Source of the DNA: Octopus bimaculoides
Taxonomy: Eukaryota
Direction: 5' to 3'
DNA: 64,000 nt
Assembly: GCF_001194135.2 (NCBI RefSeq)
Contig: NC_069004.1
Coordinates: forward strand, 33,546,898-33,610,897
Program-made: the position numbers and the translations under genes
In this document: positions 45,730-59,402 of the stretch, in pieces
Layout: the number at the start of each line of letters is the position of its first letter
How positions within the stretch are numbered: position 1 is the stretch's first letter
The notes under the pieces: model-generated
The model's input: only the letters and a program-made list of their open reading frames with translations
What the model was told of the DNA's origin: nothing
Databases searched by the model: none

Positions 45730-46056
45730 ATGCGTTTGTTGAACCGCCTGTCGTCCCTCGTGCTCATTATCTTATTTGCGAGCGTCCTTCTGATTGTAAT
45801 GAACGTGGTAGTGCTGCACAAGATCTGGCAGGAGCAGGTCAATCTGAGAGAAGGACCAATGAAGATGCTGTTTGAACCAGGACCACCAATCGATGACATC
45901 AACGTAAACAACATCGACAGCAACAATGACGCCAACCCCAATCTTGATGGTGATGCTAAAATCAACATTCCTCCAAGACAAGTTATGGCAGATCTTCCAG
46001 TGAACCGCATCGCCAATGCGAAATCAGGGCCAACTCTTTGGGTTCATGCAAAGAAG
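45730..46056 (+). CDS. TTLL15: TTLL15 first coding exon: TM helix and stem
   Basis: Acceptor ggtttcag| at 45704 with 25 nt of UTR, ATG at 45730, donor AAG|gtaaag; MRLLNRLSSLVLIILFASVLLIVMNVVVLHK...WVHAKK. Confidence 0.85.
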
Positions 46057-46273
46057 GTAAAGTGATGGATGGAAACATTTGTTATTAGGGGGAAGTTCTA
46101 TACAACATGGTGGCCAAATAGCTTGTCTATGTATGTATATATCTGTCTGTCTGTATGTATTTGTTTGTCTGTTTGCCTGTTTTCTGTGAGGATGCACCAT
46201 TTCCAAGCCAGCTCTGTGCTAAACACACATACATAACCACATACACTTGCATCTATATTGTATATTGTATATA

Positions 46274-57900: not shown

Positions 57901-59402
57901 TAGAGGACACCTGACCAATGTGTCACGTTTTTTTTTTAATATTAGTTTTAATTGCTTTTCTTTTAATTAAACTAATTGATGAATCTGTAACTCTTTGTCT
58001 TGTTCTTCTGCAGAGTCCTCGATGACAACAACATGGAGGTGTCTGACGCGGACATCAATGTGTTCAGTGACCGATGTATGGCACCAGAATGTAAAGCATC
58101 AAATTGTACATTATGGGTGAGTAAATAAACATTACCATCCTCCCCGCCAACACTCAGTTATAAATCTGAGTCTGGTTGCTGGAAACTGTTCAGAAGCCTG
58201 CTTTGTATATAACTAATAACGCTTACTACTCATGATTCAATACTAAAAAACAAAAGACGTGGCCATGTGGACAGAAGTTTGCTTTCCAATCACACGTGTC
58301 CAGGTTCAGTCCCACTGTGTAGCACTTTGAGTAATTGTCTTCTACGATAACCCTGGCCTGACCAAAGCCTTGAAAGTGGATCTAGTAAATGGAAACTGAA
58401 AGAAACCTGCTGTGTGTATGTTTGTACCACCACCACCACCACCACTTGATAATCGGTGTTGATTTGTCTATGTCCTTGTAAATTAGCAATTCAGCATAAA
58501 AGATCAGCAAAAAATAAATACTGGGGCAAATTCATTCAACTAAAACCCCTCAAGGTAGTGCTCCAGCATGGCCGCAGTCCAACGACTAAAACAAGTAAAA
58601 GATGAAAGGCAAAAAGATTAACAGGACCTGAACTCAGGACATAAAGGGTCAAAAGTAACACTCCACTCACCGTTTTGGCTGCCATTCTATGTAGTCTGTG
58701 TAAAATATTCGATAAAGCCAATTAAAACCAACAACATCTCTAATTGTGGTTTCTGTTTCTTGTTTGATGCCAGAAATGTCGGCTGTGTAATTATTGTATG
58801 ACACCCAGAGAGAAACTCATTGCTAAAATGGCCTACTTGGAACACATCAACCGAGGAAATACAAGACGAATCCTCCCCCCCGTGGCCGTAAGTCTTTAGA
58901 ATTACTTTTCTTTTATTGCATTACTATATTTATATATCAGCTGTACACTGTCAATGTAATGTGACAGTCCCAATAAGGGAATCATACTTCTGCTATTTAT
59001 CCCTAGGAAGCTGGACCGCTTCCTGTCGGCCTTGACACATTTCCTGTGTCCTTATATTTGTGAGGGGGAGACAAGCACCCCCACCCAGCCCAGCCTGCAT
59101 TCAGGGACATGTTTCTGAAGTAGCATGACCAGCTGGCTGAAGATGTCTGTCAACCTTTCGCAAATATATATATTTCTAGTGAAAACACATTCACTGATTA
59201 CAAAAATTAGAAATGGTCTAATTATAAATCTCACAGAGAGACTTAAGCAGCAGTTTATATTTAAAATTTTTTTTTGCAGGACACAGCTGAAGAATTGGCC
59301 ATTTTGACCCAAACTGAAATCTCTCAAAAGAGTGAAGAGAATAAATTTATGGCATTATGGTTTCTTGGACAGTGCCAAAGAGATGCAACTTGGTGCCATT
59401 AG
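45730..59402 (+). CDS. TTLL15: TTLL15-like tubulin-tyrosine-ligase-family ATP-grasp ligase with N-terminal signal anchor; exons 45730-46056, 47161-47316, 48355-48474, 49275-49350, 50305-50374, 50825-50908, 52110-52194, 53115-53193, [missing], 56068-56134, 57257-57383, 58014-58116, 58774-58887, 59280-59402
   Basis: TTL-domain motifs WDVLWSHEYP, KVNHFPGSGYITNK, LWVQKSNNHRG, FVQEYISEPLLIDGHKFDIGVY, NFFELVRFDF, LMEANMSPNL; C-terminal WFLGQCQRDATWC*. Subfamily assigned from recalled invertebrate TTLL15 motifs, not from a search. Confidence 0.88.
46364..46577. mobile_element. Palindromic MITE
   Basis: 92-bp arms (46364-46455 and 46486-46577) with about 2 mismatches. Confidence 0.8.
47161..47316 (+). 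CDS. TTLL15: TTLL15 exon
   Basis: LESGYLQHVFNVFESLG...WDVLWSHEYPF...MKPGQK. Confidence 0.9.
48355..48474 (+). CDS. TTLL15: TTLL15 exon
   Basis: VNHFPGSGYITNKVSLATSEFKFVPKAFKLPEDKNKFQNY. Confidence 0.9.
49275..49350 (+). CDS. TTLL15: TTLL15 exon
   Basis: IKRFPNKLWVQKSNNHRGIRILAPN, phase 1 end. Confidence 0.9.
49394..49697. mobile_element. Palindromic MITE, diverged
   Basis: About 145-bp imperfect arms, about 15-nt loop; fragment also near 20485. Confidence 0.75.
50305..50374 (+). CDS. TTLL15: TTLL15 exon
   Basis: LDLSKEGTFVQEYISEPLLIDG. Confidence 0.9.
50825..50908 (+). CDS. TTLL15: TTLL15 exon
   Basis: KFDIGVYAVLTSINPVRAYVLETEALF. Confidence 0.9.
52110..52194 (+). CDS. TTLL15: TTLL15 exon
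   Basis: FCPVKYYPFDASNVDKYVVGDIYTALWK. Confidence 0.9.
53115..53193 (+). CDS. TTLL15: TTLL15 exon
   Basis: IPTFYKLYKERGFTFKESFNYYLKSQ, phase 1 end. Confidence 0.88.
53265..53430 (-). mobile_element. Decayed LINE 3' fragment in TTLL15 intron
   Basis: RGKRI*IFLDQLSEDNPNLSKE*LPGTMENCELQR resembles RTE-type C-terminal ends. Confidence 0.4.
55171..56003. other. Assembly gap inside TTLL15
   Basis: N run; other gaps at 9656-9665, 27350-27630, 29590-30488, about 38405-38413, 38820-39491, 51249-51336, 62219-63181. Confidence 0.95.
56068..56134 (+). CDS. TTLL15: TTLL15 exon
   Basis: NFFELVRFDFVLDKDFNIYLME, phase 2 start. Confidence 0.9.
57257..57383 (+). CDS. TTLL15: TTLL15 exon
   Basis: ANMSPNLSSRTHEENARLYEHVIFNMLSVVGIATRAALNFPT; 3' boundary uncertain (see findings). 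Confidence 0.85.
58014..58116 (+). CDS. TTLL15: TTLL15 exon, Cys-rich
   Basis: VLDDNNMEVSDADINVFSDRCMAPECKASNCTLW|gtgagt. Confidence 0.85.
58774..58887 (+). CDS. TTLL15: TTLL15 exon
   Basis: KCRLCNYCMTPREKLIAKMAYLEHINRGNTRRILPPVA|gtaagt. Confidence 0.88.
59280..59402 (+). CDS. TTLL15: TTLL15 last exon
   Basis: DTAEELAILTQTEISQKSEENKFMALWFLGQCQRDATWCH*. Confidence 0.88.
   Translation, partial: DTAEELAILTQTEISQKSEENKFMALWFLGQCQRDATWCH

Follow-up and report, generated by a model that had tools for sequence, protein, structure and literature searches.

A TTLL15 gene of Octopus bimaculoides with the predicted layout of a secretory-pathway membrane enzyme and a remodeled ligase active site

Tubulin tyrosine ligase-like proteins (TTLLs) are regarded as writers of the "tubulin code." Among the closest described relatives of the protein considered here, TTLL6 and TTLL7 (PDB 6VZT and 4YLR) are autonomous tubulin polyglutamylases, and TTL itself (PDB 4I4T and 3TII) is a soluble enzyme of the cytosol that lacks a cysteine-rich tail and binds the tubulin dimer. 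TTLL15 has been counted as a glutamylase both in worm genetics, where it is combined into multiple ttll mutants, and in invertebrate annotations. Here we describe the TTLL15 gene of Octopus bimaculoides, which lies at 42384-59402 on the forward strand of a 64,000-nucleotide stretch of contig NC_069004.1 (hereafter the window, to which all positions refer). A reading made earlier from the letters of this DNA alone (the sequence-only reading) had proposed a TTL-family ligase built like a Golgi type II membrane enzyme. Having followed this up, we favor on balance the view that TTLL15 is a type II membrane protein of the secretory pathway, with a lumenal or extracellular TTL-type ATP-grasp domain, and that it is an active enzyme but not a tubulin glutamylase. 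It is the membrane anchor, the cysteine-rich tail, and the altered active site taken together that suggest a site of action in the secretory pathway rather than at microtubules.

The layout in question is a familiar one. Glycosyltransferases, FAM20C and VLK, and FICD are built from a short basic tail, then a signal anchor and a disordered stem, and finally a catalytic domain in which cysteines are conserved, and they work with a lumenal nucleotide cofactor. TTLL15 shares the layout of these Golgi type II enzymes (glycosyltransferases, FAM20C/VLK-type kinases, and FICD) by architecture only, with no homology, and we know of no ATP-grasp amino-acid ligase in the secretory lumen.

The gene was identified by searching with a draft protein joined from the open frames between 45.7 and 59.4 kb. 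The best match was UniRef A0A0L8ICW7 (P0001), an O. bimaculoides protein of 544 amino acids named "Tubulin polyglutamylase ttll-15"; the second was its Octopus sinensis ortholog (P0002, 565 amino acids), and next in the list came more than 100 proteins from many invertebrate phyla, each of about 500 to 540 amino acids and most of them labeled "probable tubulin polyglutamylase ttll-15." The Caenorhabditis elegans protein TTLL-15 (NP_505663, P0371) is 39% identical to the octopus protein over 446 residues (E = 7e-105). On these matches, the locus is the O. bimaculoides ortholog of C. elegans ttll-15 and belongs to the TTLL15 clade of the tubulin-tyrosine-ligase (ATP-grasp) family. Judged from the matches listed, the conservation of TTLL15 extends from cnidarians to amphioxus; no vertebrate protein was found among the best 120 matches in each of three listings.

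Unlike TTLL6 and TTLL7, TTLL15 has an N-terminal anchor and stem. The basic MRLLNR and the uncharged stretch described in the sequence-only reading are indeed there, the first at 45730 and the second, a 23-residue segment LSSLVLIILFASVLLIVMNVVVL, at 45748-45816, where the Kyte-Doolittle 19-residue mean reaches 3.15, compared with at most 1.6 downstream. The N/D/P-rich stem is there as well, running from 45817 to 46032, with N, D, and P making up 37.5% of its 72 residues. These elements, together with the basic juxtamembrane tail IKQIQRPKMRLLNR, are all encoded in exon 1 (45705-46056). Where the sequence-only reading has to be corrected is the start of the protein, which it had placed at the methionine at 45730. 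The annotated start codon is further upstream, in exon 0 (42384-42418), which precedes the span then considered, codes for MTSIKDLQKALA(I) at the start of the cytosolic tail, and ends at a GT donor; the same MTSIKDLQKALA sequence is present in O. sinensis. The methionine at 45730 is residue 21 of the annotated protein and hence internal, and the cytosolic tail has 26 residues, not 6. The topology argument is unchanged whichever start, 42384 or 45730, is used.

An AlphaFold2 model of the O. sinensis ortholog, built on an alignment of 83 sequences, has a predicted local distance difference test score (pLDDT) of 86.3, with a helix at residues 24 to 60 and a globular part that is confident from residue 121 to the end. 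Stem residues 63 to 114 are disordered in this model (pLDDT below 50), and across the family the stem varies in length and is not conserved in sequence. As in type II membrane enzymes, a flexible segment separates the anchor from the catalytic domain. Three Branchiostoma proteins (P0163, P0169, and P0190; 664 to 795 amino acids) have the anchor near residue 35 and a stem of about 250 to 370 residues, far longer than in other phyla.

The sequence-only reading had asked whether orthologs also carry the transmembrane segment, and they do. Counting as an anchor a hydrophobic 19-mer with a mean hydropathy of at least 1.6 (mostly 2 to 3) upstream of the NHFPG motif, we found one in 100 of the first 120 homologs and, in an enlarged set of full-length TTLL15 proteins (480 to 600 amino acids), in 167 of 175, with C. 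elegans TTLL-15 contributing an N-terminal hydrophobic signal. The exceptions look like N-terminally truncated models. The anchored set spans corals, molluscs, annelids, brachiopods, nemerteans, bryozoans, priapulids, nematodes, chelicerates, crustaceans, insects, echinoderms, hemichordates, and amphioxus; its insects include Anopheles and two other dipterans, and its traceable metatranscriptome members are copepods. The type II layout, as predicted from these proteins, is a conserved trait of the whole TTLL15 clade and not a quirk of the octopus gene model.

The residues flanking the anchor bear on its orientation. Mean net charge is +2.9 over the 15 residues before the anchor and -0.1 over the 15 after it, and the N-terminal flank is the more positive one in 82 of 90 full-length sequences, so that TTLL15 has what is expected of a type II membrane enzyme, a single N-terminal anchor with a more positive N-terminal flank. 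According to the positive-inside rule, the more positive flank stays cytosolic; these charges therefore predict a cytosolic N terminus and a lumenal C terminus. In addition, a juxtamembrane dibasic [RK]x[RK] motif occurs in 52 of 88 sequences, compared with 29 expected from shuffled tails. Motifs of this type are endoplasmic reticulum (ER)-export signals of Golgi glycosyltransferases, and their enrichment may lend weak support to a secretory location.

Could the protein sit in the membrane the other way around? It would then be a tethered TTLL with its N terminus out and its catalytic domain facing the cytosol, at an organelle or ciliary membrane, where it would ligate tubulin or some other cytosolic protein and where its tail would bind two zinc ions. 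The nearest relatives of TTLL15 by sequence and by fold are the autonomous glutamylases TTLL6 and TTLL7, which speaks for such an arrangement, as do features of the cysteines and sequons considered below. We nevertheless regard it as unlikely. The charge bias just described favors the opposite orientation, N-terminal tails of up to 58 residues with basic clusters would need to be translocated, and in Caenorhabditis the N terminus resembles a signal peptide. In C. elegans TTLL-15, which begins MGLLDSKLCMMILAVSVLIIDINFEA…, a short h-region lies at the extreme N terminus, in place of the 26-residue tail and 23-residue anchor of the octopus protein, and there is no long N/D/P-rich stem, although the motifs, the cysteine tail, and the presence of an N-terminal hydrophobic signal are the same in the two proteins.

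The same N-terminal features also bear on a mitochondrial location, in which the basic N terminus and the transmembrane segment would act as a stop-transfer signal, leaving the protein in the inner membrane facing the intermembrane space, with its cysteines oxidized via Mia40. The order of a basic N terminus and then a transmembrane segment would suit this, and the intermembrane space is both oxidizing and ATP containing. However, the N-terminal tails include acidic residues and show no conservation as amphipathic presequences, the twin motifs that Mia40 substrates typically carry, C-x3-C and C-x9-C, are missing from the C-terminal tail, and the Caenorhabditis N terminus is plainly signal peptide-like. 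We find a mitochondrial location very improbable.

The second feature pointing to the secretory pathway, on the reading we favor, is the C-terminal tail. Its cysteines follow exactly the pattern given in the sequence-only reading: CMAPECKASNCTLWKCRLCNYC, or C-x4-C-x4-C-x4-C-x2-C-x2-C, spliced over 58075-58797, and then C-x6-C at 59373-59396. Exon 12 (58014-58116) encodes an acidic linker, the first three of these cysteines (CMAPECKASNC), and an NCT sequon at 58102-58110; exon 13 (58774-58887) encodes cysteines 4 to 6 (KCRLCNYC) and a LEHxNR…RRxxP motif; and exon 14 (59280-59402) encodes the terminal helices, the final pair (CQRDATWC), and the stop codon. In profile alignment with TTLL7, the tail sits where TTLL7 has its cationic microtubule-binding helices, and the LEHxNR…RRxxP element that follows the core is common to both proteins. 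Thus, in place of the cationic helices of TTLL6 and TTLL7, TTLL15 has an acidic eight-cysteine domain; the net charge of the tail segment is -1.6 ± 2.5, compared with +11 for the TTLL7 equivalent. The last 120 residues, folded alone with an alignment of 30 sequences, again gave a confident model (pLDDT 86.6, predicted TM-score 0.78), which argues that the tail is an autonomous domain. A Foldseek search of PDB with the isolated tail model found no structural neighbor (best E = 5), a result that speaks neither for a zinc finger nor for a known disulfide-rich module. Of 1.84 billion representatives, 389 proteins matched a profile of the tail, in each case at the C terminus, and a TTL domain preceded the match in all 8 of the longer proteins that we scanned with Pfam. 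Two unusual proteins came up in the tail-profile search: P0221 (936 amino acids), with its two TTL stretches, has the look of a tandem duplication or of a fused gene model, and P0340 (701 amino acids) combines a TTLL15-like protein with an RNase_T exonuclease domain and is probably a gene-model fusion.

Nine cysteine columns are invariant or nearly so across the family, namely C299 in the catalytic RFC motif (positions here and below are in O. sinensis numbering) and the eight in the tail. All other cysteines together make up only 0.23% of the residues after the anchor, compared with 3.05% in the aligned core of TTLL6 and 1.21% in that of TTLL7, and are thus about 5- to 13-fold rarer. Such depletion of nonconserved cysteines is as expected for an oxidizing compartment and would be unexpected in a cytosolic domain. 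Losses within the TTLL15 alignments (A1 and A2; P0064, P0081, P0118, and P0088) give some indication of possible disulfide pairing: one ant sequence has lost both C557 and C564, a joint loss suggesting that they may be partners, and three tick sequences have lost C484 alone. About half of the family has a tenth cysteine, in NRGSCRR, where Octopus has threonine.

The third feature is the catalytic domain, which the sequence-only reading had recognized correctly as a TTL ATP-grasp domain (PF03133; E = 2.8e-43 here and 1.5e-49 in the O. sinensis ortholog). Its closest solved relative is TTLL6 (profile E = 1e-47; Foldseek E = 6e-23, with a target-normalized TM-score of 0.70 to 0.74), followed by TTLL7 (profile E = 1e-40), TTLL11, TTL (Foldseek E about 1e-15), and TTLL3. 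For the roles of individual residues, we relied on the TTLL6 study (bioRxiv 10.1101/2020.06.07.139295). The ATP and magnesium ligands of TTLL6 are shared and invariant in 83 of 83 TTLL15 sequences: the ATP-binding lysines K125 and K174 correspond to K193 and K232; R241, which contacts phosphate and the donor alpha-carboxylate, to R297; the magnesium-binding D346 and E359 to D397 and E410; and the catalytic asparagine N361, magnesium binding in the family, to N412. In the octopus gene, the first lysine is in the NHFPGSGYITNK motif of exon 3 (48355-48474), the second in WVQKSNNHRGI of exon 4 (49275-49350), the arginine in the (R)FC motif of exon 7 (52110-52194), next to the invariant C299, and the asparagine in ANMSPNLS of exon 11 (57257-57384). 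Because the equivalents of all six residues are invariant, TTLL15 is still likely to be an enzyme.

What surrounds this preserved core has changed. R219 of TTLL6, equivalent to R202 of TTL, stabilizes the transferred gamma-phosphate, and its mutation kills activity in both enzymes (bioRxiv 10.1101/2020.06.07.139295); TTLL15 has instead an invariant glycine (G274, 82 of 82), in the KFDIGVY of exon 6 (50825-50908). Conversely, G344, two residues ahead of the magnesium-binding aspartate, is replaced by an arginine (R395, encoded in exon 10) in 83 of 83 sequences, and this arginine and the aspartate are on the same strand face. The two changes may amount to a relocated arginine, with R395 compensating for the loss of R219. 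The HLTN motif, which coordinates the nucleotide and whose N264 is essential in TTLL6 (bioRxiv 10.1101/2020.06.07.139295), is unrecognizable. A clade-specific KYVVxDxYxPxW takes its place (KYVVGDxYxxxW as encoded in exon 7), with Y314, V315, D318, and W324 invariant and Y320 found in 82 of 83 sequences. The phosphate loop after K232, also in exon 4, is shorter than in TTLL6 and carries an invariant His-Arg. Finally, K377, which together with K283 binds the donor glutamate through its gamma-carboxylate and is, like K283, invariant in all glutamylases (bioRxiv 10.1101/2020.06.07.139295), is a tyrosine in TTLL15 (Y429, 83 of 83; RLYEH in exon 11). The same position is a tyrosine in TTL (bioRxiv 10.1101/2020.06.07.139295), which shares the fold of TTLL15 but keeps R202 and HLTN. 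The K377 column is aligned with high posterior confidence to both TTLL6 and TTLL7. K283 falls in a poorly aligned loop, where its equivalent is ambiguous (K341, within three residues of it, is Lys or Arg in 77 of 83), and we therefore count only the K377 change as robust.

In sum, TTLL15 has the Pfam profile, the ATP-grasp fold, and the ATP/Mg residues and R241 of its family but not the second phosphate-stabilizing arginine, and of the marks of a tubulin glutamylase it has neither the donor lysine K377 nor the cationic microtubule-binding domain. The octopus protein shares with C. elegans TTLL-15 all of the motifs that mark the clade: KFDIG, RFC, YVVxDxYxPxW, ELVRFDF, EANMSPNLS, and the eight-cysteine tail. 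We read this pattern as that of an ATP-grasp enzyme that is conserved and probably active but differs from tubulin glutamylases in its donor and acceptor sites.

One might argue that an active site changed this much no longer ligates anything. TTLL15 would then be a lumenal or extracellular pseudo-ligase that has kept the fold and nucleotide binding and serves as an ATP-dependent binder, a scaffold, or a catalyst of other chemistry. The invariant glycine at the position of an essential arginine, the unrecognizable HLTN motif, and the mild phenotypes of worm mutants would all agree with this. But the ATP-binding lysines, R241, both magnesium ligands, and the catalytic asparagine have stayed invariant in more than 80 sequences, from cnidarians to chordates; the new invariant R395 faces the active site, as would fit relocation of the arginine; and the clade-specific pocket residues D318, Y320, W324, Y429, and C299 are invariant, as for a working substrate site. 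We consider loss of ligation quite unlikely.

Certain observations do weigh against a lumenal ligase, and some of them suit a cytosol-facing enzyme directly. To our knowledge, all characterized TTL/TTLL enzymes are cytosolic, and characterized TTLLs all act in the cytosol or in cilia. The number of conserved cysteines is odd (nine), and totals of 9, 10, and 11 per protein are about equally common; cysteine totals are not predominantly even, and we dropped parity as evidence for disulfides. The C-x2-C-x2-C spacing would also suit the binding of metal in the cytosol, and eight cysteines would be the right number for two Zn(Cys)4 sites. There is no enrichment of sequons (3.6 per protein, compared with 2.8 expected from composition). 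The NCT sequon noted in the sequence-only reading is present, but it is specific to Octopus and not conserved elsewhere in the family, and it lends no support to glycosylation. The only conserved sequons, N412-M-S(-P) and N416-L-S, are both within the catalytic motif EANMSPNLS, where glycosylation might be harmful; in the cytosol, both would escape it. A proline directly after the sequon serine makes glycosylation unlikely, as would apply to N412. N416 is clade specific and invariant and may be either a functional residue or a conserved glycan site. We dropped glycosylation as an argument for the lumen; the sequon evidence is neutral and stands as a caveat. As for the active site, the loss of the essential R219 could mean that ligase chemistry has been lost, and K341 may be a retained K283 equivalent, so that glutamate may yet be the donor. 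Overall, the type II secretory layout put forward in the sequence-only reading holds for the anchor, the charge of its flanks, and the flexible stem and draws no support from sequons or cysteine parity. The cytosol-facing arrangement, for its part, has to accommodate the strong depletion of nonconserved cysteines, a protein that has neither the microtubule-binding domain nor the donor lysine K377, and worm mutants that show no glutamylation phenotype.

The worm data come from studies of tubulin glutamylation. Staining with GT335 stayed at the wild-type level in the C. elegans ttll-15 deletion tm3871, and in worm TTLL-15 Chawla et al. found no cationic microtubule-binding domain (PMC5051658). 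Adding deletions of ttll-9 and ttll-15 to a triple ttll mutant did not lower axonal staining (PMC11216746). In a study that asked which other ttll deletions suppress ccpp-1 defects, the new suppressors reported were ttll-5 and ttll-11 alone. The phenotypes of ttll-15 mutants are only mild. The worm literature counts ttll-15 as one of five glutamylases, by homology. The "polyglutamylase" label of TTLL15 thus rests on homology, and it conflicts with an active site in which K377 is Tyr, R219 is Gly, and HLTN is unrecognizable, as well as with the absence of the cationic domain. The sequence-only reading had held that the label would be wrong for a secretory-pathway ligase, and the active site lends support to that; with K341 as a possible K283 equivalent, a glutamate donor may nevertheless be retained. 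In full-text literature searches, "TTLL15" occurred in no paper and "ttll-15" only in C. elegans papers; searches that paired TTLL with a transmembrane segment, the Golgi, a lumen, or the secretory pathway returned nothing relevant, and we found no discussion of TTLL15 topology, although automatic database predictions of a transmembrane segment may exist. The gene family is already known. What is new, and apparently undiscussed in the searchable literature, is the combination of a conserved, predicted secretory topology and a remodeled active site in a TTLL clade.

The structure of the octopus gene itself is clear except at one point. We mapped the gene with P0001 and P0002 by tblastn and then searched the splice junctions exhaustively. 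The outcome was 14 exons over 42384-59402, all on the forward strand and with GT-AG at every junction, and their translation matches P0001 residue for residue. In addition to the exons already mentioned, exon 2 (47161-47316) begins the TTL N-domain (SGYLQHVF…WDVLWSHEYPF), exon 5 (50305-50374) encodes ELDLSKEGTFVQEYISEPLLIDG of the adenine-binding region, and exon 8 (53115-53193) encodes IPTFYKLYKERGFTFKESFNYYLKSQ, its last base being the first of a split codon. Two assembly gaps fall within the locus. The first (51249-51336) is intronic, between exons 6 and 7, which join in frame (…ETEALFR to FCPVKYY…) as they do in orthologs; since nothing is missing relative to the orthologs, this gap is without coding consequence. 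The second (55171-56003) is a different matter. O. sinensis and every other family member have 35 further codons between exons 8 and 10, QSPKEFWDKLKMAIASVYIEKEKFLIQANSHFKSS (O. sinensis residues 354 to 388), and these residues had no counterpart in the readable DNA flanking the gap, at 53194-55170 or 56004-56067, by tblastn (word size 2, E = 10) or by Smith-Waterman alignment in three frames (noise scores of 30 or less). Because it is absent from the readable flanks, this conserved exon (exon 9, with an inferred size of 109 nucleotides) is most probably concealed in the gap. The ortholog-supported acceptor of exon 10 is the AG at 56066-56067, placing the exon at 56068-56134 (FFELVRFDFVLD…YLME). 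The public model instead has it at 56025-56134, using a cryptic acceptor at 56025, 21 bases past the gap, and so gains 13 to 14 intron-derived residues, VLDWYFIDSVALF (P0001 residues 353 to 366). An alignment with C. elegans TTLL-15 has a hole at the same position. The readable catalytic domain is thus incomplete, most probably by one assembly-hidden exon in its central helical part, and the true protein should be about 566 amino acids long. The public O. bimaculoides TTLL15 model contains an annotation error, in which a conserved segment of 35 to 36 residues has been replaced, and alignments that include it will propagate the error. There is a more general lesson for genome annotation here, in that a public gene model silently spans an assembly gap by using intron sequence.

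Two gaps and a run of spurious residues might also be taken as a sign that the whole architecture is a gene-model artifact, with transmembrane or cysteine-rich exons of another gene misjoined to a TTL domain. This is essentially refuted, and we rejected it: the same architecture recurs in independent genomes and in single-transcript assemblies from many phyla, the tail is C-terminal in every one of its profile matches with a TTL domain ahead of it wherever longer proteins were scanned, and the octopus splice sites are all GT-AG and in frame.

In the window as a whole, G+C is about 38%, microsatellites are numerous, and there are eight assembly gaps. Upstream of TTLL15, an exon at 1835-1978 on the forward strand encodes an N-terminal portion of a trypsin-like serine protease (…IVAGRKV…TAAHC; PF00089, E = 5e-07) and belongs to a neighboring gene. 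On the reverse strand, a 154-amino-acid open reading frame (ORF) at 21193-21657 resembles the C-terminal part of a mariner/Tc1-type DDE transposase (…WQQDSAPCHTSRRTQSW…), has no Pfam match at E ≤0.01, and is probably a decayed transposon; also on the reverse strand, a 169-amino-acid ORF at 28049-28558 resembles the C-terminal region of ORF2 of a LINE-like (long interspersed nuclear element) retroelement and has no Pfam match. A short interspersed repeat is present in eight copies including the query, at 6283, 14803, 24349, and 54430 and, on the minus strand, at 20250, 44269, 45538, and 51672. The copies share a core of about 30 to 60 bp at 84 to 91% identity; two are in TTLL15 introns, and another precedes exon 1 by about 110 bp. 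Scans of the whole window for Rfam families and tRNAs found no match.

Taking these observations together, we take TTLL15 to be a single-pass membrane protein in which a short basic tail at the N terminus leads into a signal-anchor helix and a disordered stem, followed by the TTL catalytic domain and the clade-specific eight-cysteine C-terminal domain. The N terminus would be cytosolic, and the catalytic domain would be lumenal (in the ER or Golgi), exposed at the cell surface, or shed. Binding of ATP-Mg is probably kept, and a carboxylate would be activated as an acyl-phosphate, as in other TTLLs. With the substrate pockets rebuilt, the donor is probably not glutamate and the acceptor not a tubulin tail. 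The suggestion of the sequence-only reading that amino acids may be added to secreted proteins or glycans would fit these observations. A bolder proposal, which we put forward tentatively and hold to be somewhat less than an even chance, is that TTLL15 is the founding member of a class of lumenal or extracellular ATP-grasp protein ligases, a Golgi or ER type II enzyme that uses lumenal ATP to attach a non-glutamate amino acid, or some other amine, to carboxylates on proteins or glycans of the secretory pathway. If so, the modification would be one not yet described in the secretory pathway, and "tubulin polyglutamylase" would be wrong in hundreds of database entries.

If the catalytic domain of TTLL15 is lumenal, genetic designs that use ttll-15 as a tubulin glutamylase would need reinterpretation. 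ATP-dependent amino-acid ligation would then join phosphorylation (FAM20C and VLK) and AMPylation (FICD) as a cytosolic type of chemistry relocated to the secretory pathway. Most invertebrates would carry an undiscovered modification on secreted or membrane proteins, and for C. elegans the alleles tm3871 and tm4957 already exist.

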